Assembly: GCA_037447605.1 (NCBI GenBank)
Contig: CM074812.1
Coordinates: 1,612,001-1,676,000, forward strand
Direction of reading: 5' to 3'
DNA length: 64,000 nt
DNA from: Zygnema circumcarinatum SAG 698-1b
Lineage: Eukaryota > Plantae > Zygnematophyceae
A program made the position numbers and the translations under genes. Positions 2,092-57,075 of the stretch are shown piece after piece; the first letter of the stretch is position 1, and the number at the start of each line of letters is the position of its first letter. The notes under the pieces are model-generated. The model was not told where the DNA came from. It saw only the letters and a list, made by a program, of their open reading frames with translations, and did no database searches.

Positions 2092-4293
2092 ATGTTGCCG
2101 CGAGCAGCGAACTCCTCTCCGCCAACCATGGGGACGTCCGATGACGTCAGCGGTCACCCGCCGCCCTCAACACCCATCACAATCGCGCCAGCTGTCGGCG
2201 CGAGGCGCTCCCCCACGGAGGTGATGCCGTCAGCTGAGGAGGGCCCTAAATCGCCCCTCTCCAACGGCCTCGAGAAGATGAAGAAAGTCAAAGTGAAGCA
2301 GCTGCAGGTGAGAGGGAGGGAGGGAGGGAGGGAGGGAGGGAGGGAGGGAGAGAGGGGAGGGAGGGAGGGAGGAAGGGAGAGGAGAGAGGGAGAGCGGGGG
2401 CAAGGAGGGAGAGAGGAGGGAGGGAAGGAGGGAGGGAGAGGAGAGAGGGAGAGCGGGGGCAAGGAGGGAGAGNNNNNNNNNNTGGGGGGGGGGGGGTGTT
2501 GAATATGATATACAGAGATATATGTATATATTTATTGATGTTTTTTTTTCCTATTTTTTGTTTCACCTGCATTTTTAGCATTTAGTACAGTGGAGAAACG
2601 CATGAGCGTATTTTTTATAATTTTTATGGTTTCCGGGTCTGTATAGATGCCTGCTTCCTTGAGAAGTCTCGACGAAAGGGGGAGAGGAAGAATGAAGACA
2701 GACAGATAGGAGGGGATAGGGGAGGAGTGACAGTGACGTAGAAGGAGAGGGAAAGTAGAAAGGGAGGGAGAGACTGTGAGAGAGACGCGTGTGAGGGTGG
2801 GCGATAGGTAAACGGACAAAGAGAGGCAGAGGCAGAGGATGGAAGTGAGGTAGAGGTAGGAGGGAAAGAGAGAGCATGGGAAGGAGATGAGAGGAGAGCT
2901 GGGTGGGAGTGAGAGAGCGATCGAGAGGGGGCAAGTCGAAGGTTGGAAAAGGAACATCGGAGGGAGGAAGAGGAGATAAAACGAGCGAGAGAGAGAGAGA
3001 GAGAGATAGAGAGAGAGGGGGAGACGAAGAGTGAACGCCTCCCTCTGGCAATTATAACAGCTCAACGGGTTTTCGCATGGAACAGGCGAGTCAGTTACCG
3101 GAGCGCGAAGCTGATGAAGCACGCGAAAAGGCGAAGGCAAAGGCAGAGGTGCGCTCTCTTTAAAGGATCGAAAACCAATTCCAAGTTTTTGTGTTATGGG
3201 AAATCTGAGGTTTACGGCTTCGCAGTATTGAAGGGTCCTAGAGCTGGCTGGGTTTCTGGATTTTTCAGTTGCTAAAAAATTGGCTTGTGAAACACACAAA
3301 CTCTTTCTCTCACTCTCCCCTCTCTCCCCTCCATCCCCTTCTCACCCACTCCTCCCGTCTCCTCACTCCCCTCTTTCCTCTCCCCTCTCCCCTCTCCCTT
3401 CTCGCTTCTCCCCCCTCTCCCCTCTCCCCTCTCCCCTCTCCCCTCTCCCCTCCCTCTCCCANNNNNNNNNNCCTCTCTCCCCCTCTCTCCCCCTCTCTCC
3501 CCTGTCCCATCTCTCCTCATCTCCCTTCTCCCTCTCCCCTCCCTCTGCAGATTGTGGACTTCCAAAAGTATTGGGACAGTCTCGACCGCTCCATTGGGAC
3601 CACTCCCTCCCCGCGGCCGAGACATTTGGAGTCTGTCAAAAGTTCTGAACTTTTGGACACTCTCATGTCGCCCAGAGTGGATTCCGCAAGGTCTGCCCGG
3701 AAAAAATAAGACATTAAAATATGAAAAAAGTAAAATAGTAAAGCATGGAACTTAATAAACGTGAAGCTTGAAAGCAGCTAAAAATTGTGAAAAAAATTCC
3801 ACAGTAAGAGGTTCTAAGTTGGAAAAACCCGGGCTTGGATGAATGGTTGGAATGTTGGGTTTTCTTTTTCTTTGATTATAGGGAAGAATTGGATTAATTG
3901 GTAACCAGAAATTTGACGGTTTTAGGGGGGGGATATGTTTGTTATTATTTTTTTTGGGTCCGTATCAGATCGAGCATGCCGTCACCGAGGCACCCAACAC
4001 CAAGGTGGGCTTGATAGTGGTTGCGAGGTGGGAGGGGGAGGGAGGGAGGGACGGTGGGGAGGGAGGGAGCGGGAGGAGGGGAGGAGAGAGGGAAGAAGGG
4101 GAGGAAGGGAAGAGTGAGAGAGAGAGAGGGCCGGGAGGGACAAGTGGGATGGTCGTGGCTACCGTTGATTACTTCTGTGCGCTTTTTACATCTCCCTCTC
4201 CCTCCCCTCTTTCTCTCACTCCCCCCTCTCTCTCCCTTTCCCCTTGCCCTCTATCTCACACTTCCTCCCTCTTTATCCCTCCCTCTCTCTTTC

Positions 4294-4335
<42 letters not shown>

Positions 4336-5226
4336 TCTCCCTCTCTCCCTCTCTTCCTCTCTTCCTCTCTCCCTCTCTCCCTCTCTCCCTCTCTNNNNNN
4401 NNNNCCTCTCTCCCCCTCTCTCCCCCTCTCTCCCCTGTCCCATCTCTCCTCATCTCCCTTCTCCCTCTCCCCTCCCTCTGCAGATTGTGGACTTCCAAAA
4501 GTATTGGGACAGTCTCGACCGCTCCATTGGGACCACTCCCTCCCCGCGGCCGAGACATTTGGAGTCTGTCAAAAGTTCTGAACTTTTGGACACTCTCATG
4601 TCGCCCAGAGTGGATTCCGCAAGGTCTGCCCGGAAAAAATAAGACATTAAAATATGAAAAAAGTAAAATAGTAAAGCATGGAACTTAATAAACGTGAAGC
4701 TTGAAAGCAGCTAAAAATTGTGAAAAAAATTCCACAGTAAGAGGTTCTAAGTTGGAAAAACCCGGGCTTGGATGAATGGTTGGAATGTTGGGTTTTCTTT
4801 TTCTTTGATTATAGGGAAGAATTGGATTAATTGGTAACCAGAAATTTGACGGTTTTAGGGGGGGGATATGTTTGTTATTATTTTTTTTGGGTCCGTATCA
4901 GATCGAGCATGCCGTCACCGAGGCACCCAACACCAAGGTGGGCTTGATAGTGGTTGCGAGGTGGGAGGGGGAGGGAGGGAGGGACGGTGGGGAGGGAGGG
5001 AGCGGGAGGAGGGGAGGAGAGAGGGAAGAAGGGGAGGAAGGGAAGAGTGAGAGAGAGAGAGGGCCGGGAGGGACAAGTGGGATGGTCGTGGCTACCGTTG
5101 ATTACTTCTGTGCGCTTTTTACATCTCCCTCTCCCTCCCCTCTTTCTCTCACTCCCCCCTCTCTCTCCCTTTCCCCTTGCCCTCTATCTCACACTTCCTC
5201 CCTCTTTATCCCTCCCTCTCTCTTTC

Positions 5227-10449: not shown

Positions 10450-12227
10450 TCAGAGCTCACTTTCGGGAAGAGGAGGGGTCGGTGGGACGGGCGGCTCGTC
10501 GTCACTGGGACACCCGAGAGAGAGGGAGAGGGAGAGCAAGAGGGAGGGGGGGAGGGAGAATAAGAGAAAAAGAGAATAAGGGGAGTGTGGTGGGGTGAGT
10601 TAAAAATGTTGAGCAATTCAATACTCATCTTCAACAAACCATTCATTCAAACAATTCATTCTAAAAAAAATTTAGGCCAAAGGTCTGCCGAGGAAGGCAG
10701 ACAAAGAGGGGGTGTCGATGCTCCTCCAGAGAAACTGAACTGGAAGAAAGTTGACGGATTCTCTAACAAGTGCGACATGGAAAGGGGTCGGAGGGCGAGT
10801 GCGTACTTTGGGCACGCTTTGGTGATGACGAAGCAAAACTCCTCCTCCACATCCCTGTTTAGGGCCAGCTGGCCGGTTCTCAGGGCGCGCGTTAACTGCA
10901 AGGGAGGGAGAGGGAGAGGGAGTGGAAGTGGGAGAGAGCACAATGTAAAATATAGGGCTTTTCTGTTTTTCTGTACTCACAAAGTGAAGCAAGGAACGAG
11001 GACTGATTAAACGCTTCAGTACTGGAGGGATAAGGAAAAGAATTAATCGCTCACCTCCTCCTCATAATCTTCTACTAACCTGCAATGAAAAAATACCGGA
11101 AAAATAAAAGAAGCAGTGTCCGATTTAATACTCGTAGTGCAAAGCATACATGTTAGATCCCAAAACTGCTATTGTCAGAGAGATGTTTAAGTATGAAGAA
11201 AGGCAAATGGAAAAGTTGGGGGAATGTGCATGCATCTGCAAGAGAGAGAGGGAGGGGGGCGAGGGGAGGGGGAGGGGGAGGGAAAGGGAGCGAGGAGGGA
11301 AGGAGAAATTGAGTGGTCAATGGAAAGAGGGAGAGAAAGAGAGAGAGAGAGAATGTCTACCTGTCGCACCATCTCATGAGTTCCTTTCCTTGAGTCTCTG
11401 CCACCATCTTTACTGCAGGGAGAAGTTCCCCACATAAAAAAAATTAGAAATGAACAAATCTGCAATAAGGACAACAGATAGAAAGGAGGCATGGGAGGGA
11501 CGAGAGCGAGAGAGAGGGAGGGAAAAAGAGAGAGCGAGAAAGGGAGAAAGAGAAGAACCAAACAAATAACGAGGAAGTACGAGAGCATAAAAGCAAAAAG
11601 AAAAAACTACTTCGTACTTCTCTCTGAAGTTTTGATCTTTGGGTTGTCTTTTGACCAACTCCTTTTTCCTTCGCCCTGCTCCTCAAGCATCCCAGCGCGA
11701 AGCACGAGTTACTCAGAGGGAGAGTGAGAGAGGGAGTGTGAGAAAGAGAGAGAAAGAGAGAGAGAGAGAGAGTAGGCAGCGAGAAAAACGAGTGGAAAAG
11801 GGGGGGAGAGAGTAAAACGAGTGGGCGAGAGTCAAAAAGAGTGGAAGGGGGAAGATAGAGGGAGAGAGAGAGAAAGAGAAGCAAGATGGAAAGGGGGAAG
11901 AGAGAGGTAGGGAAAGAGAAACGAGAGGGAAGGGGGGCAGGGAGAGAGAGAGAAGGAGAAACGAGAGGGACGAGGGGGAGCAATGAGAAACAAGATTCAG
12001 GAAAGGAGGGGGTGGAGGCGGGGGAGAGGTAGAGGGAGAGAGGGTGAAAGAGGAGGAGAAGATAAAAGGGAGGTGGGGAGGGAAGAGGGAAATGGAAGCT
12101 GACCACCAGGCTGTAGCCCTTCATGTTAACGCAGAGGCTGTCCAAAATCTCAAATGACCTCAGCTCACTCACTCTGTTCCGTTCAGCCCCCTCCACCGAG
12201 AAAGAGAGATTGAGAGAGAGAGGGAGA

Positions 12228-12308
<81 letters not shown>

Positions 12309-13447
12309 CTCCCCTTCTTTCTTCTGCAGCATTCCCCTAATGCACTCATCCACATCGGAACAATAGTGGAGCAGGCACATCAGAGGAATGCATCTCTTTA
12401 ATTTCTGAATGATTGACGTGAAAAATTAGTACCTGTAATTTGATTGTTTAAGTGCATGAAGTAAATACTTTTGTGCTCACCGGTAGTCGATGACTCGGCC
12501 TTCTCGCTGGCCTTTGGAGTCGAGACGGTGACGCATATCAAGGTGGTTCCGAGGTCGCTCCTGCACTCGCCAGACTCTTTGAGTGTGAGAGAGAGAGAGA
12601 AAGAGAGAGAGGGGAGGGGGAGGATAGAAGAGAGAGGGAGGGACGAGAGTGAGGACATGGGGGACGAGAGGGATCGAAGGGGAAGGAGAGAGCGGGAGGA
12701 TGAACGAGAGAGGGAGGGAGAAGGGTGGGGGGGGAGAAGAGAGGAGAGAAGGAGGAGAAGAAAAAGGAGAGCACGAGAGAGGGGGAGAGGGACAGAGAGG
12801 GAGTGGCGAAGGAGAGGGAGTAAGAAGAAAGACCGCGAGAGAGGGAGAGAGAGCTAGAGGGAGAGGGGTGGGGTAAAGGGTTGGACGGCAGACGAAAGAG
12901 AGGCAGAGAGTGAAAGTGGGGATGATGGATTATGAAGGGAGAGGGAGGGAGTGGGAAACAAGAACAAGATGGGGAAACTTCACGAAAGCGGTCGGAGATG
13001 ATGGGGGAGAGAGGGGGGAGAGAAGGAGAGAGAGGTCGGGAGGGGAGCAGAGGGAGGGAGTGAGGGAGGGAGGGGGTTGATGATCTCAGAGTGCTGACCG
13101 TAGACATGATCTTAAGCAGCTCCACCTGTTAAGTCCAACCCATTCACCAACATCAATGAAGTGCCAGATCGAAGGTCATTTTAAAAAAAAAATGCAGCAT
13201 TCAATGAAAATGTAAAGCAACCTCAATGCGTCTAAAACAGGTTATCAACACAGCATTACAGAACTGAAAAAAATAAAAATAAAAAGAGAAGGAGAACGGT
13301 AAGACTTACCGACACCATCATGCAGGCGTGGCATCTATTCTCTATGGCCTTCACATGCGCGAACTGAACGGCGAACAGAACAGCATGTAGCGCCCATATG
13401 AACAGGAAAGCCGGACTAGAAAGGAAGAGGTCTCTCTTAAAGGCCAT
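10450..13447 (-). CDS. CNPY: Canopy homolog (saposin-like DUF3456 / MSAP family), ER-lumenal protein with signal peptide
   Basis: Exons 13447-13310, 13125-13099, 12560-12481, 12173-~12104, ~11681-11618, 11412-11361, 11079-11055, 10895-10807, 10504-10450 splice in frame. Product: hydrophobic N-terminus, [81 protein letters not shown]. This matches the plant Canopy pattern recalled as [35 protein letters not shown]. Confidence 0.9.
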
Positions 13448-14347
13448 TTTTGCACTTTCTCTGCTTGAGAAAGGAGAGAGAAATTAAACGAATAAGCACA
13501 TAAGTAAACAAGGACCTCACAAGAGTTATAATATGGAGAATCAGCAGCTAGGAGAAACAAAAAAATCATATCTTTTTGAAAAAGATAGAAAAAAATAGAC
13601 AAAAACATTGGAAGTGAGGCAGTAGGACTGACAGAGTGCAGGAGCGAGGAGGAGATAGAGGGGCTGCGGGCGGATTGTGCGGAACAGAGAGAGAGCGAGA
13701 GGGAGCGAGAGAGAGAGGGGGGGTTATCAGAGAGGGACAGTGAGAGAGAGAGGGAGACGGGTGGGGGTGAGTGAGTTCGAGAGAAGGGGGGAATAAAGGT
13801 GAGAAGGACATGGGGGGAGGAGAGGAATGAGGGCGGAGAGAGGGGAGAGGGACAGAGTTAGGAGAGGGAAAAAGAGAGAATAGGGCAGACTGAGTGGAGA
13901 GAGACAAAGAGAGGAGTGGGCGGGGGGGGAGAGACAGAGAGAGAGAGGGAGAGAGAGAGAGATGCATGATGAAGGAGGAAGCTAGCCCTTATACCAGCAA
14001 TCCAAATGCAGGCCAAAAGAGGGAGTTACCAAAACAGTTGTCGGAGAAGATGAGTTCAGTGTATCCCGATATAAAGGTGTGCAGAGGGCTTTCGGCCTCT
14101 ACTCCGACTGGACTGTTCCCCGCATTCCTCCCACAATGCTTCAACGCACAGCTGGAGAGGGAGAGAGGGAGAGAAAGACAGAGAGAGAGGGAGATAAGAG
14201 AAGAGAGCGAGAGGGAGAGAGAGAGTGGGGGGGGAGGGAGAGAGTAATGAGAGAGAGTGGAAGGGAGAGAGCGGAGAGACGAGAGGGCAAGAGAGAGTCG
14301 GAGAGGCGGAGACTTCTGGAAGGCCAAATGGACGTTGCGTGTAGCGA

Positions 14348-14400
14348 CCAATGAAAACGTGCCACGTGTCCTTTGTGTACACGTGGTAAGCAGCGATTGG
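14348..14400. promoter_or_regulatory. Inverted pair of perfect ERSE motifs (CCAAT-N9-CCACG) upstream of Canopy
   Basis: CCAAT GAAAACGTG CCACG at 14348-14366 (+) and CGTGG TAAGCAGCG ATTGG at 14382-14400 (-). The motif match is exact; function is inferred. Confidence 0.65.
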
Positions 14401-14778
14401 ACAATTCCTGGAATGTAGGCTCCCTTGGTCGGTTGGCGCAACGATATATCGAGATATGTGGCGATTTGATTGTGGAATATGCTTAGGATATCGCGATATA
14501 TCGTAAGCCCCTACTGAATGTAACTCTGAATCTCTCTCTCTCACTATGAATTTGTCAATGGCCTCAAGACAAAAAAGTGGGGAAAAAAAGTCGTTGGGAA
14601 GTGCATGGAGAGGCGTTTTAGTTGCAACATTTGTGAAGTAAAAAAAGGAAAGTCAATGAAAGTCAATGAAAGCAGATGTAATGAGTCATCATGTTCCAAA
14701 GGTCAAGACGGGAAACACGGGTGAACCTTCGTTTGAAGATTTCGCACAACGAGGTTTTCCGAAAAGTAGACAACTTGC

Positions 14779-15300
14779 GGGAGAGGGAGAGGGAGAGGGA
14801 GAGGAGAGTGGAGAGGGAGAGGGAGAGGGAGAGGAGAGGGAGAGGGAGAGGAGAGGGAGAGGGAGAGGAGGAGAGGAGAGGGAGGAGGGAGAGGGAGGGA
14901 GAGGGAGAGGAGAGGGAGAGGAGAGGAGAGGGAGAGGGAGAGGAGAGGGAGAGGGAGAGGGAGAGGGAGAAAGGGAGAGGGAGAGGGAGAGGAGGAGAGG
15001 AGAGGGAGAGGGAGAGGGAGAGGAGGAGGGAGAGGGAGAGGAGGAGAGGGAGAGGGGAGAGGCAGAGGCAGAGGCAGAGGCAGAGGGAGAGGGAGAGGGA
15101 GAGAGAGGGAGAGGGAGAGGAGAGGGAGGAGGGAGAGGGAGAGGAGGGAGAGGGAGAGGGAGAGGAGAGGGAGTGGGAGAGGGAGAGGGAGAGGGAGAGG
15201 GAGAGGGAGAGGGAGAGAGAGAGGGAGAGGGAGAGGGAGAGGAGAGGGAGAGGGAGAGGGAGAGGGAGAGGGAGAGGGAGAGGGAGAGGGAGCGGAAGAG
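14779..15300 (+). repeat. (GAGGGA)n hexamer microsatellite
   Basis: Read directly. Confidence 0.9.
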
Positions 15301-15744
15301 AGGGGAAAGTGGGGAGAGGAGGAAGGTTTGAAATAAGGGAAGCACAGAGGCAGAAAATGGGAGAGATCGTGATCTTAAAGGAAATAGTAATTTATTCACT
15401 GGTCCCTAAAAGTTGGTACAGCCATTATGCCTTTTAACAAATTCCTCATAAAATTCTGTCGCAGTCGATTTTCATTGGCCAACGGAAAGTCGAACTGACT
15501 GATCACATGAGTCGACTAAGAACACCTTTTTCTTCAATTTCTTTCAAGGGGAGACCAAAATTTTCCAAAAGCTATGGCTCAAGAACTGTAATGAGGACAC
15601 CGCTTAGATTCTTTTTAACGTTGTAAGAAATTCATCCGTTGAACGGAATTCAACGAGATTTCTTTAACAGTTACACGTACACTCCAGTCCACAAAAACAA
15701 AAAGAGCGTCCCGAATCCCTGCAATTAAAAACGCAGATAATTGT

Positions 15745-16714
<970 letters not shown>

Positions 16715-18769
16715 GAGAGGGGGGGGGGAGGGGGCATTTGTAGGGAAGGGGAAAGGAGAGGGAGGGGGAGAGGCAGAGGGACAGGGAGAGGAAGAGGGAA
16801 AGGAGAAGAGCGAGGGAGAGGGAGAGGGAGGTGAGGAAACGGGAGAGGGAGAGAGATGGGAGGGAGGAGTGGAAGAAGGCGAGGGAGAGGGAAAGGGAGA
16901 GAGGGGAGCGGGAAGAAGAGGGAGGGGGGAGGAGGGAGGGGGCATTTGTAGGGAAAGGGAAAGGAGAGGGAGGGGGGAGAGGATGAGGGAAAGGAGAAGA
17001 GCGAGGGAGAGGGAGAAGGAGGAGGAGATGAAACGGAGAGGGAGAGGGATGGGAGGGAGGAATGGGAGAAGGCGAGGGAGAGGGAGAGGGAGAGAGAGAG
17101 CGGGAGAGGGAGAAGGAGGGAGGGAATAACAGAACATGTTTGTGAAAGTTTTCTAACTGAAGTGTTTTGTGTCCATAATCTTTTGGAGGTGTTTTGAGGG
17201 TTCGAATAAGGCTAAAACCTTACCAGACAGACTGATGCCATTCCACCAATAGAAATTTCCTTCACCAAACTTCGGTTGAATTTTGAGGACGTCACTTCGT
17301 ACCTGCAGGCGGTTTGAGAAAAAGTTCAAGCCTCAATCAAGAAATCAATAACAGCTCAAAATTCTCACGTTCGTATGTTTGACGTCTAAGAATAAGCGAA
17401 ATCCAAAAAAAAATAGAATTCATTATTGAAAAAATGAACTCCTTAAACTATAGTTTAGAGAAATACGCACACAAAGAAAGCGGCCGTCGCGATGAGTCCG
17501 GATGCCAAGAGAACGACCGCCAGAAGGGGATAAAGGTGAAGGGGAACAGGACTGGTTATGGGAGAAAATGTCAATATTTCCTGACACAAAGAGTACAAAA
17601 AAAAAAGAAAAAAATGACCGAAAGATCAGGCATTTTCTAGATCAGAGGCTTTCGTGATATTTCAAAACCGCATTGAATAGGAACCGCACTGTGATGCTTA
17701 GTGGAGTGCAGGAATGCTTTGAAACGTGTGAATCAATATCAGTACATAGAATTAGGGTTCGGACGGAGAGCAGCACTGGAATAGGTCCACATATGCAAAT
17801 ACTCCTCTTACAAGCAGGAGAGAAGCCTGAAAGTGAGACCCACCTCATCACCATCTCTCTCTCACTCTCTCTCTCTCTCTCTCTCTCACTCTCTTGTAAT
17901 AGAAAAACTAGAAGAAAATGAAAAATCTCTTTATCTACACATGAGGTGAACGATAGGAGGGAGGGGAAATGAAAAGGGAGGGTGGAGCAGGTAGAAGACC
18001 AAATCAACAAGGTGGATCCAAGCAAGCACAGGTGGATCCATGCATGGCCTGAACCCTTGACAAGCCTCACACCTCCTCAACCCTCGACCCTGCTCCCTCT
18101 CTACCATCCTGCTTCTCCCTCCGTACAGACGATAGATATGCATACCATGCAGGACCTACATTTTGCATGCATGCATGCATACATGCATCGAGGCATTCTG
18201 TTCAAGGAGGAGGAGGAAGTCACAGATATCGATAAAAGACAGCAACTGGTTGCAGAGGTCCATACATCTCGCCCTCCCTCCCCTCCCACACTCTCCCTAC
18301 TCACTCTCCCTCTCTCTCTCTCCCTCCCTCTCTCTCTCTCCCTCCCTCCCTCCCTCCCTCCCTCCCACCCTCCCTCCCTTCCTCCTCCCCTGCATCCAAC
18401 AGATCCACAGCGCAAGCACAGCAACCGCTGACGCAGGAAAGGAGCCAGCAAAAGCTTACCACACCCGCCATGGCGGACCCCTTCAACCCTAAATCCGCGA
18501 ACCCTAGAAACCCTAAATACGCTGAAACCACAAGGTCCGCATTGAAGCTCTCTCTGCCTTCCGAAGTGCCAAAACAAATGTTTGCGATGACATGGACCAA
18601 TCCGGACCTGCCATGTCATCAATGTGACACGTGGCTACGTTTCATTCGTTTCCAACCTTCCATGTAAGCACAATGTGATACGTGGCTAATTTTGATTCGT
18701 TCACGCGATGCAAAAAGAGTGGACGCACAGCCCAAACTGTGCCGCTGGAGGAATTTGATGATGTCATAC

Positions 18770-19025
18770 TATAATCAACCATTGGATGAACCATTGAAAT
18801 GGTTGTGAGCCAGTGACTCGCGACCAAGCCAACCATTGGATTCATCATTGGGGGCGTCCTATGGTTGTGAACCATTGACTCGCGACCGAACCAAACAATT
18901 GCCAATGGTCGCAACGGTTGGATGCGAATGGTTGCCAACCATTCCAATAGTTGATAACCACTGCGCGTCCAACCATTGGCCCACTCTTCCAATGGCTGGT
19001 CGCCCAACGGTTGCCAACCCAATGG
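18770..19025. repeat. Degenerate array of the same palindrome family
   Basis: GAATGGTTGCCAACCATTCC, CCAACCATTGG and related variants. Confidence 0.75.
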
Positions 19026-19273
19026 TAAACCTCCCTTAAATGCGCCTACCGTCGCGTCGCGCAAAAATCGGGAAAGCGTCAAATCATATTGCGCCGTTAC
19101 ATGTGCAAGAACATCTCCACAGCGGCAGACACGTGGAAGTTACTCACCGACGTTCCAATCAAAACAAACTGCAAACCCCAAACCACAAACCGACTTCCCA
19201 GAGCATTCGGTTTACAACCCACAGTTTGGCCCTTTCCGGATTCAGCGACGGAAATTCTCTTTAAGCGCTTCAC

Positions 19274-19292
19274 CCAATCGCGAGCTGCCACG
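19274..19292 (+). promoter_or_regulatory. Perfect ERSE motif ~410 bp upstream of the FAO start
   Basis: CCAAT CGCGAGCTG CCACG. Confidence 0.5.
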
Positions 19293-19700
19293 TACAAAAT
19301 AACGCTTTCCTTTTCCAGGCGGCGAATTTTCGAGTCTTGATCGGCCGTCACGTCCCGCCACGTCCCGTCACGTCCTGTGGACATTCACCACCGTTTCCAT
19401 CGATTCGTACGCTCGCTTTCGGTCGTCTCCGTCTGTTGTATCGTATCGGTATCTTACTCTGACGATACGATGCTGAGTCATCAGGTACATTCGTACGGTA
19501 CGGTCTTCAATCCGTACGGCACCAACCGTACAACTACGCCTCCCGCGGTCCCCGTCTCTCGCGCCCCCTCCCTTTTCCCCTCTCACTGCCTCCCTCTCTC
19601 TCTCCTTGCCTCCCTCCCTCTCTCTCTCTCCCCCTGCCTCCCCCCTCTCTCTCTCTTTCTCTCTCCCTCCCCGCCTCCCTCCCTCCCCAACCCTAATACC

Positions 19701-21786: not shown

Positions 21787-24700
21787 GCCCCCCCCCACCT
21801 TCCTCATCTCTCCCAGTTCGCTTCCCCTCTCCTCACTCCCTCTCTCTGCCTCTTCTTAGTTCTGTGCCTCTCGTGTTTTCCCTTGTTCCTTCCCCTCCTC
21901 ACCTCTCTCTCTCTCTCTCCCTCACTCTCCCTCGTCCTCCTTCTCTCTCCTTCCTCTTCTTTCTTCTGACTCCCTCTGCAGCCTACTTACACAAAGGTAT
22001 GCTTTTGCAGCTCGATGAGAACGGACGAAATCCTTTTTGGGATGCTTTGGGCTATCCAGGCCCGGACCCGGCCATGGTGAGGGGAGAGAGAGAGAGGGAG
22101 GAGAGAGGAGAGGGGATGGGGAAGGGAGAGGGAGAGGGAGAGAGGCCACTGGATGGAAGCCTAGTGAGGCTCTCTCCCTCTCCTAAGGAAAGTGTCGGAG
22201 TCGCTTTGGCGGCTGCTAAATTTCAAGTTTTGGGAGAGCTCATCACTTGTAAGGGATTGTTGAAAGCCTCTGAGCTCAAGGGGACCACTGTAAGTTGACT
22301 CTTTCTCTCTCTCTCTCTCACTCTCTCCAACTCTCTCTCTCACTCTCCCTCTTTTCCTTTCCCTCTATTTTTCTGTCGCCCCTCGTCTTTGTCAGTCTCT
22401 CCCATCCTCTCTCTCCCTGCCTTTCTTTCCCTACCTCCCTTCTCTCTCCCTCCCATGTCACCTCAAACCAACCAACCACCCAACCCTTTCTCCCATCCCA
22501 ACCCAATCCCAACACTCTGCGCTTATTATTTATTGCCACTCGCCTTGAACAGCCATTCTAATCACAACGCTGCCCTCTAACCCGCCCCCTCCTTTCTCTC
22601 TCGCCCTCTCTCCTTCCCCCTCCCTCTCCCTCTTTCACTCCCTCCCCCTCTCCCTCTCCCGTTCCCTCTCCCTCTCCCTCTTCCTCTTCCTCTCCCTCTC
22701 CCTCTCNNNNNNNNNNCCTCTCCCTCTCCCTCTCCCTCTCTCTCTCTCACTCTCTCTCCCTCTCCCTGCCCCTCCCTCTCTCTCCCTCTCTCTCTCCTCT
22801 GCTCCCCCTCTCTCTCCCCTTTTCTCTTTCCCTCTCCCTCTCCCTCTCCCTCTCCCCCTCTCTCTCCCTCTCTCTCTCTCCTCTCCCCCCACTCTCTCTC
22901 TCTCCCTTTCTCTCTCCCTCTCCCTCTTTCTCCTTCCCCCTTCCCCCCCCTCCCTCTCTCTCTCGTTCCATCTCCCTCCCTCTCTCTCTCTCTCTTCTCC
23001 TTCTCCCTCTCTCTCTCCCCCTCTCTCTCCCTCTCGCTCTGCAGGTGACCGTAATGAAGTGCGATGCAGTGGTAGTGGGGAGTGGGAGTGGCGGCTCAGT
23101 GGTAGCGGCACAGCTGGCAGAGGAGGGAGTGGGAGTGGTAGTGGTAGAGAAGGGAGAGTACTACTGCGGGAGAGATCTCAGCCTGCTCGAAGGGCCCTCT
23201 ATGGCGGCTATGTGAGTTGGGGAGACTATGAAGAAGCTATGGAATGATCATTCAATCAATAAGTAATATGAAAATAATCAAAAAGAAAAGAAGAAAACGA
23301 GAAAAGAGTAATTTTGGACCTTACAAGCCTTAAAGAAACGAAGGGGGGGGGGGGGAATAAATAATCAAATAATTTCGAAGTTAACCCTCAGTTAACCCAA
23401 ATTTTGAAAACCCTAATCTTGTGAAGGTCGACTTTTTTTCGACCAAAAAAACTCAGTTTGCTGAACCTGTTAGTTTTCCACCTACACCCTCTTTCTTTCT
23501 TTCTTTTTTTATTTATTTATTAATATTTTCTTAAATGGAAAAAAATTCAGGTACGAGTCCGGGAGTCTCCTTGCCTCCGACGACGGGTCGATTTCCCTCC
23601 TCGCCGGATCCACTGTGGGAGGTGGATCCGCGATCAACTGGTCTGCCTCTTTCCGTACTCCTCCGCACGTGCGAAAGGAGTGGACTCAAAAGTACAAACT
23701 CGAGGTAAAGGCATTCAGGGTTGAGATCTGTATCTAAGTTTTTGGATTTTTGGGTTAAAGATTTTTAAAGATTTTTTTAGATTTTTTTGCAGGTTTTGTT
23801 TCAGAACCCTTTAGGTTCTTTTGAAGGATTTTTCAGCAGGGGCAGATTTTGAGGATATTTTTTAATGCTCTTTTAGGGCTCGTTTTTAACATTTTTCTTA
23901 CGGATTATTAAGGTGTCTGTTTTGGATTTTTAGTTTATTTAGGGCTAAGGTTCTCTTGTAACCTTTTTCTTTTTTAATATTCAGAGGATTTCAGGCCTTC
24001 AGTGGGGTTTCGAAAGTTTGCAAGTATAGATATAAATTTAATGGTTAGGTGGAGAGGGGATTATGGTTCGTTGGTGTAGTTGGTTATCACGTCAGTCTAA
24101 CACACTGAAGGTCGCCGGATCGAGCCCGGCACGAATCACTTTATTTTCTACTTTTCCCGGTCTTCCTTTTTTTTTCTATGATATTTTAGGATTGCCTTTT
24201 AAGCGTCTACTCGGTGGAGTTTTTTTTTTTTTTTTTNNNNNNNNNNCCTCTCCCTCTCCCTCTCCCTCTCTCTCTCTCACTCTCTCTCCCTCTCCCTGCC
24301 CCTCCCTCTCTCTCCCTCTCTCTCTCCTCTGCTCCCCCTCTCTCTCCCCTTTTCTCTTTCCCTCTCCCTCTCCCTCTCCCTCTCCCCCTCTCTCTCCCTC
24401 TCTCTCTCTCCTCTCCCCCCACTCTCTCTCTCTCCCTTTCTCTCTCCCTCTCCCTCTTTCTCCTTCCCCCTTCCCCCCCCTCCCTCTCTCTCTCGTTCCA
24501 TCTCCCTCCCTCTCTCTCTCTCTCTTCTCCTTCTCCCTCTCTCTCTCCCCCTCTCTCTCCCTCTCGCTCTGCAGGTGACCGTAATGAAGTGCGATGCAGT
24601 GGTAGTGGGGAGTGGGAGTGGCGGCTCAGTGGTAGCGGCACAGCTGGCAGAGGAGGGAGTGGGAGTGGTAGTGGTAGAGAAGGGAGAGTACTACTGCGGG

Positions 24701-27700
24701 AGAGATCTCAGCCTGCTCGAAGGGCCCTCTATGGCGGCTATGTGAGTTGGGGAGACTATGAAGAAGCTATGGAATGATCATTCAATCAATAAGTAATATG
24801 AAAATAATCAAAAAGAAAAGAAGAAAACGAGAAAAGAGTAATTTTGGACCTTACAAGCCTTAAAGAAACGAAGGGGGGGGGGGGGAATAAATAATCAAAT
24901 AATTTCGAAGTTAACCCTCAGTTAACCCAAATTTTGAAAACCCTAATCTTGTGAAGGTCGACTTTTTTTCGACCAAAAAAACTCAGTTTGCTGAACCTGT
25001 TAGTTTTCCACCTACACCCTCTTTCTTTCTTTCTTTTTTTATTTATTTATTAATATTTTCTTAAATGGAAAAAAATTCAGGTACGAGTCCGGGAGTCTCC
25101 TTGCCTCCGACGACGGGTCGATTTCCCTCCTCGCCGGATCCACTGTGGGAGGTGGATCCGCGATCAACTGGTCTGCCTCTTTCCGTACTCCTCCGCACGT
25201 GCGAAAGGAGTGGACTCAAAAGTACAAACTCGAGGTAAAGGCATTCAGGGTTGAGATCTGTATCTAAGTTTTTGGATTTTTGGGTTAAAGATTTTTAAAG
25301 ATTTTTTTAGATTTTTTTGCAGGTTTTGTTTCAGAACCCTTTAGGTTCTTTTGAAGGATTTTTCAGCAGGGGCAGATTTTGAGGATATTTTTTAATGCTC
25401 TTTTAGGGCTCGTTTTTAACATTTTTCTTACGGATTATTAAGGTGTCTGTTTTGGATTTTTAGTTTATTTAGGGCTAAGGTTCTCTTGTAACCTTTTTCT
25501 TTTTTAATATTCAGAGGATTTCAGGCCTTCAGTGGGGTTTCGAAAGTTTGCAAGTATAGATATAAATTTAATGGTTAGGTGGAGAGGGGATTATGGTTCG
25601 TTGGTGTAGTTGGTTATCACGTCAGTCTAACACACTGAAGGTCGCCGGATCGAGCCCGGCACGAATCACTTTATTTTCTACTTTTCCCGGTCTTCCTTTT
25701 TTTTTCTATGATATTTTAGGATTGCCTTTTAAGCGTCTACTCGGTGGAGTTTTTTTTTTTTTTTTTCTCCTCTCATGCAAGTGTAGTGCAATCTCCTGAA
25801 CGGAGCGGTACATGGAAGGGGCTGTTCTATGCAGAAATTTAGTTCTACGGAATTTGACGAAGCCCTGGATGCTGTTTGTGCCCGACTGGGGGTACATGTC
25901 AACGGAACGGAGCACAGTTTTACAAATTCCGTTCTACTGAAGGGCTGCAAAGAACTGAACTATCCTGTTATTGATATCCCTCGAAATGCCCCCGGAGCAC
26001 ATTACTGTGAGATTTATACGTTTTTTCTCTAAACTTAATCCAATTAATTTAATTTAGTTTCTTACTAGTTGATTCCTTGACGTAGTTTCGCTTTCGGCTC
26101 GAATGCAGGATTCTTTGTTTTTTTTTTTTTTTCATTTAAAGAAAAAAGTTGATTTTTTCTTTTGCAGGCCATTGGTGTGGTTTTGGGTGCTGGAAAAGAG
26201 AAAAAAAATCGACTCCCGAAACGTGGTTGGCAGATGCGGCAAAAGCCGGAGCCAAAATTTTGAGTGGGGGCAGAGTTGAAAGGATTCTGTATAAGCCGAA
26301 GGAAAGGAACGGGCAGCAGGAAAAAGAATTAAAAAAAAGAAATTTAAAGGCCTGCGGAGTTGTCGTAAAAATCGGAGAGGGAGAGAGACTTGTGATAGAG
26401 GCAGCCATTGTGGTAGTGGCGGGAGGAAGGTAAGGGCACAAAGTAGTGATATCTAATATATTATAGGGAAGTGAAGTTATGCATTGAGAGAGGGGGGGGG
26501 TTGGGAGAGGGGGATGGGTAGGGAGAGGTGGAGGGGGAGGGAGAGGGGGAGGGGTAGGGAGAGGGGGAGGGGTAGGGAGAGGGGGAGAGGAGAGAGGAGG
26601 GGGAGGGCGGAGAGACGGAGTGGGGAAGAGGGGAGACGAGGAAGTGGGGAAGGACGAGAGAGAGGGGGGAATGAGAAGGGGGAAGGGGAAAGGCAGAGAG
26701 GGGGAGGGGGGAAAGGAAGGGAGAGGGAAAGTGGCCGAAGGAGAGGGAGAGTGGGGGGTGGCGGGGAGGGGAGGGGGGAGGAAGCGGCGGAGAGGGGGAG
26801 AGGCGGAGGGTAAGGGGGAAAGGAAGGAGGAGTTGGAGGAGGAGGAGGGGGGAGGAGGGAGGGAGGGGAGAGTTGGAGGGAGGATGAGGAGGGAGAGCAG
26901 GATAACTTAGAAGGTGAAGACGGAGAGTGGAGAGGAGTGACCGAGAGAGAGAGGCGGAAAGCAGCAGAGGGAGAGGGAGAGAAAGGCCGCGAAGGCGGAG
27001 GTAGGACAGATAGGGAGGGAAAAGTTCAACATGCTCAACTGATAAAAACATCCTTCTTTTTGTTTATTCTTCTCCCCCTCTCCCTCTTGTACCCACCCCC
27101 CTCTCCCTCTCTCTCTCTCTCTCGCACTCTCTCTCTCTCTCTCCCTCCCTATTGTTGTGCAGTCTGCAGACTCCAGCCCTCCTCTTGAGAAGTTCCGTTC
27201 CGAACCGTAACATTGGGCGATCACTCAGGTCTCAATTTTTCTCCTTTTTCCCATTTTTTTTTTCACCATCAAGCATACGATTTGAACTCTAAGATCTGAA
27301 ACCCTAATCCTCCAAAAACTGTGAAACCCAACATGGAAAGCCTGAAGCTTCACCACCTAAAACCCAACATTTTCACCCTCCAACTCTAACTTTAATACCC
27401 TAAAACCTTACGTCCCAACATCCTTATTACCCCTAATTTGTAAATTTCTTTGAATGGGAGTCTGCATGCAGAGTCCATCCAGTGACGGCGGTTGCCGGAG
27501 TTTTTCCAAAGGGAGAAAATTTTAAGGGGCAGTCCTTTGAGGGAGGGATAATGACGGCATGCTGCACTGTGGCGGCGAATTGGGAGAGCAGCGGATATGG
27601 GACGCTCCTGCAGGTGGGAGAGGGAGAGGGGGAGGGGGAGGAGGGGAGGGGGGGGAGGGGAGGGGGAGGGGGGGGGGAGGGGGGGAGGGGGAGGGGGAGG

Positions 27701-34557: not shown

Positions 34558-34631
34558 GGTTCGTTGGTGTAGTTGGTTATCACGTCAGTCTAACACACTG
34601 AAGGTCGCCGGATCGAGCCCGGCACGAATCA
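34558..34631 (+). tRNA. trnV-AAC: tRNA-Val (AAC) in the PsaG/nicotinamidase intergenic region
   Basis: The 74-nt sequence is identical to 24065-24138 but has unrelated flanks; a T-run terminator follows. Confidence 0.93.
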
Positions 34632-35136
34632 CTCATAATTTTACCTTTTTCTGTCCGTATGGTACCACCATACCGTACGTGGTTGTACTTTTCCGTACGT
34701 CAATACATGCTATCCGTACATAGGCCATGTGCATGGTATGGGATGGGATGGTCATGCATGGCCTCTCCTTTGGCACACTCCCCCTTTGAAGCAGGAGGGA
34801 GGCGCTTGGAAGGGATTGGAGGGGAGTGGGAATTAGGGTTAGAGTTTTGAGGGGAGCAGGTGGGAGGAGGAGAGAAGAGCTGACAGGATAGGGTAGGGGA
34901 GGGAGGGCAATAGAGGGAGGGTTACTTGCAGCGCGTGGGTGGATATGATATGCATTCCGAGTGGTGTCTGCAAAGCGCGTCTGCAGTAAAACGGAACTCC
35001 AACCCTAAGCTTTTGCGGTTACCGTCCCTTTTTAAGTAGTGCCTTGAAGGGGGGAGGGGAGAGGGAGGAGGAGGAGAGAAGGGGAGAGGGAGGAGGCGGA
35101 GGGGCAGGGAGAGGGAGAGGGAGAGATAGCGGCCCC

Positions 35137-41629: not shown

Positions 41630-42021
41630 GGCTGCCACGTCGGCCGTACACCCTGAACCCTAAGCCTCCATTGACGCAAAACCCTACAAACCCTAAAACC
41701 TGCAACCTGAACCCTTCGCCGGGAGAAGAGTCAGAGCGCGCAGTGCTGCAAAGCGCAAACCCTAATCATACGAGCCCTCCAAAACCCTGAACCCTGCACC
41801 CGAGGCGCGCAGAGGGAGGGCACCAAGCCTCCTCCCTCTCCTTCTCTCTCCCTCTCTCTCTCTCCCGCTCCCTCTCCCGAGGCGCAAACCCAGTTGTTTG
41901 CAGGTTTCCTCTCAAAAACCAGTTTGAGAGCCGACGTATGATGACGCTCATATCGTTGAACCGTACCGTAGGATATACGGACTGCCTAGGCTATTGTTCT
42001 AGTCTATATGCCAACTATTGT

Positions 42022-42760
42022 AATGGTTGCCAATTATTGGATTATTGGTTGCGTTGAATGGTTGCCAACCATTGGATTCATCATTGGTTGCGTTGAATGG
42101 TTGCCAACCTTTGGATTCATCATTGGTTGCGTTGGATGGTTGCCAACCATTGGATTGCCAACCATTGGATTCATCATTGGTTGCGTTGAATGGTTGCCAA
42201 CCATTGGATTCATCATTGGTTGCGTTGAATGGTTGCCAACCTTTGGATTCATCATTGGTTGCGTTGGATGGTTGCCAACCATTGGATTCATCATTGGCTG
42301 CGTTGAATGGATGCCAACCATTGGATTCATGCTTGGTCGCGTTGAATGGTTGCCAACCATTGGATTCATCATTGGTTGCGTTGAATGGTTGCCAACCATT
42401 GGATTCATCATTGGTTGCGTTGAATGGTTGCCAACCATTGGATTCATCATTGGTTGGGTTGAATGGTTGCCAACCATTGGATTCATCATTGGTTGCGTTG
42501 AATGGTTTCCAACCATTGGATTCATCATTGGTTGCGTTGAATGGTTGCCAACCTTTGGATTCATCATTGGTTGCGTTGGATGGTTGCCAACCATTGGATT
42601 CATCATTGGTTGCGTTGAATGGTTGCCAACCTTTGGATTCATCATTGGTTGCGTTGGATGGTTGCCAACCATTGGATTCATCATTGGCTGCGTTGAATGG
42701 ATGCCAACCATTGGATTCATGCTTGGTCGCGTTGAATGGTTGCCAACCATTCCAATGGTT
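42022..42760. repeat. 39-bp minisatellite, ~18 units, with an internal palindrome
   Basis: Unit AATGGTTGCCAACCATTGGATTCATCATTGGTTGCGTTG. Degenerate extension runs to ~43030. Confidence 0.95.
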
Positions 42761-43484
42761 GCGAACCCATTGATTCGTGACCCAGGCAACCAATGAATCC
42801 GACGGCTGAAAACCAGTGCCAATGCCAATGATTGTTATCATTCCAATGGTTGCCAACCATCGCCAATGGTTGCGGATCATTGCCGTTGGACTGAATCGAC
42901 CATTGCCAATGGTTGTAAGCATTTTATCCCAATGGTTGCGCACCATTCGAATGGTTGCAAACCCTTGGACGTCCATTCAAGGGTTGGCCATGTAATGGTC
43001 GGCGATTCAATGGTTGGCGATCCAATGGTTGGCTATCCCATGGTCCGCCCTTGGCAAGGGATGCCGTCAAATGGACATGAACAAAGGCAACATGGGGAAC
43101 CACGAGGAACCAAATGGCCAAAAGGGGCCTAAGGACGAATGAAGGACATTTGATGTCTCCATGAGGTACATGCATGCAAGTGCCATCGCAGTTTGATCAA
43201 TATCTCGGTTGTGAATTTTGAGTTTCTAAGGCCAAGTTTTTGTTAGGTTCTAGAGGCAGATTGAACAAGCCCAGACAACAGACGATCAAGATGAAGATCG
43301 AAATCCAGATCGTGATCGAGGCCGGCGGAGTCCACCCGGATCCATGAGTTCAACAGATCAATCAGCCTCCTCCTCCGTCCGAAACCCTAAAAATCTCGGG
43401 TTCAACTGCTGAGCCGTCCGCACGAGCGAGCCGTTCAATTCCGCCACGTGGCGTGCATTTGGGCAATCGTCGAATATATAAAAA

Positions 43485-44533: not shown

Positions 44534-44552
44534 CGTGGCAGCCCCCTATTGG
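44534..44552 (-). promoter_or_regulatory. Perfect ERSE motif in the RIN13-kinase intergenic region
   Basis: Plus strand CGTGG CAGCCCCCT ATTGG, which is CCAAT-N9-CCACG on the minus strand. Confidence 0.4.
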
Positions 44553-45886: not shown

Positions 45887-45959
45887 CGATCACGGTGGGG
45901 GTCGAACCCACAATCTTTGGTTTCGAAGACCAACGCCTTATCCATTAGGCCACACGACC
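45887..45959 (-). tRNA. trnR-TCG: tRNA-Arg (anticodon TCG)
   Basis: Reverse strand reads GGTCGTG-TG-GCCT AATGGATA AGGC-G-TTGGT CTTCGAA ACCAA-AGATT-GTGGG TTCGACC CCCAC-CGTGATC-G. The acceptor stem has three G:U pairs. Confidence 0.9.
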
Positions 45960-56000: not shown

Positions 56001-56436
56001 AGGTGAATGGTGAATATCGGATATGAAAGAGAGTGGGAGGGGGAGAGGGAGATAGAGAGAGAGAGAGAGAGAAAGAAAGAGGTGGAGGTAGGGATCAAAG
56101 AAGTTGAATGCAAGATTCACTAACGAGCGCCACTCAAACGGGCAGAAAAAAAGCTCAACAAAATAAAAAAATAAAAGCTCCAAACTGCTTTCAATCAAAT
56201 GCATAAGAAGGAAAAAAAAAAAAAAAAAAAACGGCACATCTCGTCCCCCCCCCTCAAGAAAAAAGATGATGCCATTCGCTCACAGTGGGAGGGCGGATCG
56301 CTCTCCTAGCCAGCCTCGCCACGGACCGCCTGCAGCCTCCCGCATGGATCCCGCTGTCCAGGACGGAAACGGCTCGCAGAACTGCGGCCATGGAGCAGCG
56401 TTGCCGCCTTCGCAGGAGCCCCATTGCAGCACTCAT
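53085..56436 (-). CDS. MIC60: MICOS subunit MIC60 (mitofilin)-like, N-terminal part only
   Basis: Exons 56436-56284, 55878-54919, 54636-54031, 53225-53085 join in frame. Architecture: Arg-rich presequence-like start, single TM (IGAAATITAVAGGIAAYVWW), long acidic region, then LIYAAVHVAEERQAEVDAE..LEKELQK, resembling the recalled plant MIC60 segment FLAAIHAAEKQQAHLDAQ..LDKELKR. The C-terminal mitofilin domain is not seen and the start codon is uncertain. Confidence 0.68.
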
Positions 56437-56545: not shown

Positions 56546-56863
56546 GGGTTCAGGGTATTATTAGGGTTTACAAATTAGGGTTAAAATTAGGGTTAGGACT
56601 TAGAGATGGCTGCGACTGACGAGCGACCCCGCAGCTTCCTCGAGCCCTCCACTCAACAGCTGTATCGGCCTATACATATTCAGATACGATACGATATGAA
56701 CAAAAGCTAGATTTCATAGGCTTACTTTGAGACATCCCGATACGATATTACCGAATACCGCCTGAAAAGAAATTGTCCATTCGATTGGATATTCAATTCC
56801 CCCGTTTCCGCTCGGGCTTTGGCTTGGGGCCATTTCTCCGTTGCAGCCAAAGTTGAGCAGCGG

Positions 56864-56916
56864 CCAATGGCCGCATGCCACGTGGATATTTTGCATACGT
56901 GACGAGTTCTAATTGG
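56864..56916. promoter_or_regulatory. Inverted ERSE pair in the MIC60/SF3B2 divergent promoter
   Basis: CCAAT GGCCGCATG CCACG at 56864-56882 (+) and CGTG ACGAGTTCTA ATTGG at 56898-56916 (-; the plant-type CCAAT-N10-CACG form). Confidence 0.55.
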
Positions 56917-57075
56917 GTGATCCGGACCCTTTTGGTTTGCAAGGGAGACTCTCGTTTCTCCCTCTCCGTCTCTCACAATTCTCTCTCTCACACTCTCTCT
57001 CTCTCTCTCTGTGCAAGCAAGGAGGAGGAGGAGGAGGACGCTGAGATAGAGGGACAAGCGCAGCTTGCAGAGGCT

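Follow-up and report, generated by a model that had tools for sequence, protein, structure and literature searches.

A mirror-image CCAAT-N9-CCACG dyad in the proximal promoter of a Canopy-like gene of Zygnema circumcarinatum is probably one instance of a general promoter module

Among plants, the ABRE core and NF-Y/bZIP partnerships are known outside the unfolded protein response (UPR), and we know of no land plant in which a fixed N9 spacing or a palindromic dyad has been described as a general promoter unit. Within the UPR, the ER-stress element ERSE-I has the sequence CCAAT-N9-CCACG in mammals and CCAAT-N10-CACG in plants, and it is bound by NF-Y together with ATF6/XBP1 or bZIP28 (PMC3645738). 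Mammalian promoters also combine a CCAAT box and an E-box at a distance of 10 to 12 bp, which are read by NF-Y with USF or MAX, and they contain double-CCAAT modules with E-boxes lying between a pair of CCAAT boxes, which are 19, 24 to 28, 35 to 37, or 43 bp apart (PMC4889920). A limited search of the literature returned no paper in which CCAAT-N9-CCACG is described for algae, streptophyte algae included, as an element in general use, and this negative result lends weak support to its novelty in algae.

We analyzed a stretch of 64,000 nucleotides from the genome of Z. circumcarinatum SAG 698-1b (contig CM074812.1, positions 1,612,001 to 1,676,000; here called the window), in which an initial annotation had pointed out two inverted copies of CCAAT-N9-CCACG upstream of a gene for the ER protein Canopy. 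Both copies proved to be exact, in the orientations described and with 15 bp (14367-14381) between their CCACG ends, so that they form a mirror-image dyad of 53 bp (Table 1). The ERSE consensus and the NF-Y/ATF6/bZIP28 background on which that annotation had built agree with the literature, and both halves match the consensus exactly (PMC3645738). Each half-site widens to CCACGTG, and a G-box (CACGTG) is therefore present at 14363-14368 and again at 14380-14385.

Table 1. Coordinates of the motif loci and of the Canopy-like transcript in the window
Feature	Position	Strand	Description
Half-site A1, CCAAT-N9-CCACG	14348-14366	+	Exact match; its CCAAT is the nearest to the Canopy transcript start
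Half-site A2, CCAAT-N9-CCACG	14382-14400	-	Exact match
Mirror-image dyad, 53 bp	14348-14400		CCAAT-N9-CCACG, 15 bp, CGTGG-N9-ATTGG
Second dyad, same 53-bp geometry	56864-56916		Second half CCAAT-N9-TCACG; between SF3B2 (+) and a minus-strand gene
Single exact copy	19274-19292	+	Upstream of a GMC oxidoreductase (fatty-alcohol-oxidase-like) gene
Single exact copy	44534-44552	-	Gene-poor DNA beside transposon-like fragments
Canopy exon 1 (5'UTR)	14030-14288	-	CT-rich in sense; X1 record 2, X4 record 26; end at least 14261, ~14288 by length
Canopy 5'UTR intron, 569 nt, GT-AG	13461-14029	-	Joint 13460/14030 in all four runs; splice sites read
Canopy exon 2	13310-13460	-	Start codon ATG 13447-13445, signal peptide, CxxC motif
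Canopy remaining coding exons, first four	13099-13125, 12481-12560, 12104-12173, 11618-11675	-	RNA contigs
Canopy remaining coding exons, next three	11361-11412, 11055-11079, 10807-10895	-	RNA contigs
Canopy last exon	10450-10504	-	Sequence from loose contig letters, then located; stop 10450-10452

Expected motif counts were taken from 100 dinucleotide-preserving shuffles of the window. The window holds five exact copies of CCAAT-N9-CCACG against 0.10 expected, a 50-fold excess that none of the 100 shuffles reached, and when one mismatch was allowed, 19 matches were found against 2.25 expected. A scan of all spacings from 0 to 30 across the window revealed enrichment at N9 alone, with its five matches, while every other spacing gave 0 to 2, and the reversed order CCACG-Nk-CCAAT was not enriched in the same scan. 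The 53-bp dyad pattern is present at two loci in the window and was absent from all 100 shuffles, even with two mismatches allowed. Because of the shuffle counts, the enrichment of N9 only, and the absence of the dyad from the shuffles, a chance match is excluded, and the Canopy dyad is a real feature far above chance. The sample of the motif in the window comprises four loci with six half-sites, whose extended consensus is CCAAT-N7-TG-CCACGT, with an ACGT-core box of G-box/ABRE type.

The transcript next to the dyad was reconstructed from assembled RNA-type contigs of four public runs, a kind of contig that cannot fix a true 5' end. These contigs give a spliced, minus-strand Canopy-like mRNA with 10 exons and nine GT-AG introns, eight of whose joints were seen and the last of which was placed; ambiguous exon joints were set to GT-AG. 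Most of the mRNA is given by one contig of 757 nt (X1 record 2). Read on the minus strand, GT-AG joints are covered at high depth in all four runs, and contigs from introns are 10 to 50 times shallower. Canopy contigs extend past 14147 by 87 nt (X1) and 141 nt (X4), and in X4 a 22-mer out of the 32 listed contig letters maps uniquely to 14240-14261. The GA-rich stretch 14148-14288 was placed by the extent of the RNA contig and this one unique 22-mer, on the strength of which the Canopy mRNA reaches at least 14261 and, by length, about 14288.

The proximal CCAAT box (14348-14352) thus precedes the mapped 5' end of the Canopy mRNA by about 60 to 90 bp, and a CCAAT box classically stands at such a distance from a transcription start. 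The gene is expressed, and the Canopy dyad falls within its proximal promoter. The dyad is promoter-proximal despite its distance from the start codon because an untranslated first exon and the 569-nt 5'UTR intron lie in between. The distance of about 900 bp upstream of the Canopy ATG that had been given earlier is correct as a measurement (901 bp, from 14348 to 13447) but misleading, with the mapped 5' end only about 60 to 90 bp away. For annotation, this means that long CT-rich 5'UTRs with introns occur in this genome, so elements that seem to lie about 1 kb from an ATG are proximal. GA/CT tracts also fill the Canopy 5'UTR and most of the introns.

The reading frame of the mRNA is open across all exons from the ATG at 13447 and ends in ...PESEL. 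Translation of the RNA-defined exons gives a protein of about 197 residues with a hydrophobic N terminus/signal peptide and a CxxC motif followed by four further cysteines, and these six cysteines fit the saposin-like Canopy pattern; members of the family have about 180 residues, a signal peptide, and six conserved cysteines. The family search was run exon by exon, and each score therefore stands for a single exon and not for the joined protein: against Pfam PF11938 (DUF3456/Canopy; cutoff, 21.1 bits), exon 12483-12560 scored 12.9 bits over profile positions 20 to 45, and exon 12104-12172 scored 15.6 bits over positions 48 to 68, also below the cutoff. The two matches are consecutive and collinear on the profile. 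From the predicted sequence, we take the gene product to be a Canopy-like protein. Its earlier identification as the ER protein Canopy thus gains from the signal peptide, the six cysteines, and the PF11938 exon matches, although each match is under the cutoff. The C-terminal ESEL is not a canonical H/KDEL ER-retrieval signal; a signal of this type is found in some Canopy members and is not universal in the family.

The second dyad precedes, by about 160 bp, the ATG (~57077, plus strand) of a gene that Pfam identified as the splicing factor SF3B2 (DUF382, 1.8e-14; PSP, 9e-8). To its left, a minus-strand gene starts at an ATG near 56436 with an arginine-rich presequence of mitochondrial type, and a 5'UTR intron is probable. 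The predicted first exon of this gene (56728-56860) would have its start no more than about 50 bp from the dyad, in which case the second dyad would be a head-to-head promoter. The 439-aa and 222-aa exon ORFs of the gene had no Pfam match, the Atlas gave no usable hit, and the label MIC60 was not confirmed; the gene could be ER related. Pfam also identified the GMC oxidoreductase gene (1.9e-17 and 2.2e-14) downstream of the first single copy. Between that copy and the GMC gene, 55 bp past the motif, three tandem 9-bp NYCACGTCC units form an ACGT-core cluster (19347-19373). A tRNA-Arg(TCG) gene (45887-45959) is located 1.3 kb to the right of the second single copy, and there is a further tRNA-Val(AAC) gene at 34558-34632.

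When the flanks of the four motif loci were compared with the window by blastn, they had only microsatellite in common, and the inner spacers were likewise dissimilar. On this sequence comparison, the four loci are independent sites and not copies of a repeat, and since flanks and spacers share only microsatellite, each site arose or is kept independently. The genes beside the motif, which encode a Canopy-like protein, SF3B2, and a GMC oxidoreductase, are functionally unrelated. No exact copy was found near the RPS5, neutral invertase, and kinase genes of the window, and with several window genes thus lacking a nearby copy, the module is common but not universal. A repeat or transposon origin of 14348-14400 was considered and rejected, the blastn comparison having yielded microsatellite matches only. 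In addition, the window contains a decayed dyad-like copy (18597-18699) with the layout CCAAT-N9-CCATG, 14 bp, CGTGG-N9-ATTCG beside repeat DNA, and 51 bp past it a half-site is duplicated, with CGAAT in place of CCAAT. The decayed copy may be a relic of the module or a copy carried by a repeat.

We consider it probable, from the recurrence and placement of the sites, that the 53-bp dyad serves as the proximal promoter of the Canopy-like gene and at the same time exemplifies a promoter module with fixed geometry that is in general use in this genome and is read by NF-Y and an ACGT-binding factor (bZIP or bHLH). The same 53-bp dyad in front of SF3B2 argues for such a general module rather than a stress-only switch. 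Each half would then be a composite site, with the NF-Y histone-fold trimer on CCAAT and a dimeric ACGT/G-box reader on the (TG)CCACGT box exactly 9 bp from CCAAT, and this reader would most likely be a bZIP protein, either GBF-like or of the bZIP28/60 type. The factors themselves are encoded outside the window. A pair of these complexes would stand opposite one another, at a distance of 17 bp between the ACGT cores and 48 bp between the CCAAT boxes, and transcription would then begin a few tens of base pairs outside a CCAAT box, within a tract rich in pyrimidines. A CT-rich tract on the sense strand is found beyond the CCAAT box both at Canopy (14148-14330) and at SF3B2 (56950-57010). At Canopy, an ER-stress bZIP may use the same site. 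The identity of the bound factors, their cooperativity, and any bidirectional action are what we infer in this scheme.

With ERSE-I, the Canopy dyad shares the consensus and the spacing in both halves, the position in a proximal promoter, and the neighborhood of a gene for an ER-targeted protein (PMC3645738). Unlike ERSE-I, the algal motif also occurs beside genes for a splicing factor and a GMC oxidase and is arranged in a fixed 53-bp mirror-image dyad, and its extended consensus, TGCCACGT, is closer to a G-box/ABRE than to the GC-rich mammalian spacer. ERSE-I would be expected to mark UPR targets and not unrelated genes, whereas the motif in the window is found at SF3B2, at the GMC oxidase gene, and in gene-poor DNA, and a recognizable gene for an ER-lumen protein adjoins just one of the four loci. 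A gene with ERSE-I in its proximal promoter is further expected to encode an ER chaperone or ER-resident protein, and this is the situation at Canopy, whose PF11938 exon matches are each below the cutoff. Because a dyad stands at SF3B2 and single copies stand at the GMC gene and in gene-poor DNA, the motif marks no ER-stress regulon here, and by itself it defines no UPR regulon in the window.

The initial annotation had instead proposed a true ER-stress response element, an explanation that we now regard as rather unlikely, although it is the strongest of the alternatives. By this account, NF-Y would sit constitutively on CCAAT, and on ER stress a released bZIP28-like or spliced bZIP60-like factor would bind both CCACG boxes and induce the ER-lumenal Canopy protein, while the copies at other genes would use the same grammar for other bZIPs. 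The exact ERSE-I in both halves (PMC3645738) and the proximal-promoter position fit this account, as does a product that resembles an ER-targeted Canopy protein in its signal peptide, six cysteines, and PF11938 exon matches, with animal CNPY2 being a UPR-linked protein of the ER lumen (PMC13093825); against it, the identical dyad at SF3B2 and the single copies at the GMC oxidase gene and in gene-poor DNA mean that the motif does not predict a UPR function, and the protein ends in ESEL rather than in a canonical H/KDEL. Among other UPR elements in the window, ERSE-II was found once (~600, in repeat DNA) and the UPRE-type sequence TGACGTGR was found eight times, none of them near Canopy, and as these elements are not enriched there, they add no support for a UPR-specific promoter. 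Thus, of the NF-Y/bZIP UPR circuit with a dimeric site that had been suggested for this algal lineage, the motif stands, as do its place in the promoter, the ER-type gene beside it, and the recurring dimeric layout, but the restriction to the UPR does not, the same dyad being present at SF3B2. ER-stress control of Canopy itself is possible.

A partner of NF-Y from the bHLH(-ZIP) family, which would read the E-box/G-box in place of a bZIP and would make the module the algal equivalent of the housekeeping module that NF-Y and USF form in mammals, is improbable. Three of the six half-sites have the full CACGTG exactly 10 bp after CCAAT, within the 10- to 12-bp spacing of NF-Y with USF1/2 or MAX (PMC4889920), but the other three read CACGTA (twice) and CACGCT, which are no E-boxes, and the conserved CCACGT is an ACGT-core half-site typical of bZIPs. 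The algal sites resemble the mammalian NF-Y/USF and double-CCAAT promoters in a probable general, non-stress use, in the fixed distance of 10 to 12 bp between CCAAT and CACGTG for those half-sites that have CACGTG, and in E-boxes between paired CCAAT boxes (PMC4889920). They differ from the double-CCAAT modules in that the CCAAT boxes are inverted, stand 48 bp apart, and enclose two ACGT boxes, and in that half of the sites have no E-box. Plant NF-Y/bZIP combinations on CCAAT and G-box/ABRE sequences are similar in that CCAAT adjoins a box with an ACGT core (GCCACGT type) in a genome of the green lineage (PMC3602376).

Least probable is a chance match or an inert transposon relic that carries the motif without a role in transcription, because, although a decayed dyad-like copy does lie beside repeat DNA at 18597-18699, chance is ruled out by the shuffle, spacing, and dyad-pattern tests, the flanks of 14348-14400 match only microsatellite elsewhere in the window, and the site occupies the expected place of a CCAAT box, with an abundant mRNA whose mapped 5' end is 60 to 90 bp away.

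Returning to the general promoter module, we also propose, tentatively and with clearly less confidence than the module itself, that the dyad could be a self-contained, lineage-specific bidirectional promoter unit. The two facing NF-Y/ACGT-factor complexes would set transcription starts a few tens of base pairs outside each CCAAT, CCAAT-N9-CCACGT would be the ordinary promoter code of this streptophyte alga, and in land plants and animals ERSE-I would represent a specialized use of the same pairing. If the module does serve promoters in general, UPR targets cannot be called from an ERSE match in this lineage, and the NF-Y/bZIP pairing known from stress genes would, in this algal relative of land plants, have a constitutive role that is much wider. 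The exactly recurring 53-bp geometry also provides a defined object for studying how two NF-Y/bZIP complexes cooperate and whether or not they act bidirectionally on transcription.

To the right of the Canopy dyad, we considered and rejected a divergent transcript, the candidate being a single contig (14341-14597) whose depth of 6 did not exceed that of the intron background. Immediately beyond the dyad on this side, the palindrome CGATATATCG occurs twice (14442-14451 and 14494-14503) inside a 17-bp inverted repeat and is followed by a short CT tract (14531-14546). The CGATATATCG palindromes could provide such a transcript with a TATA-like core, the area being covered by the one depth-6 contig. 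Farther to the right of the promoter, we found a (GGGAGA)n-like array of about 530 bp (14770-15300) and a pure (GA)n microsatellite of about 1.3 kb (15740-17100), and these arrays occupy most of the space on this side.

Elsewhere in the window, the GMC oxidase gene contains an exact tandem duplication of 1,530 bp (23474-23734 = 25004-25264), in which one exon and a tRNA-Val(AAC) gene are repeated, with the tRNA copies at 24065 and 25595. A similar duplication of 933 bp is found at 3520-3777 = 4453-4710, and both duplications may be assembly artifacts or recent events. A dispersed repeat family is present at 119-650, 18645-19139, and 42002-43130, with NGWQPF/WLATIR-like peptides in several frames and without obvious coding, and it includes a long tandem array at 42002-42976.
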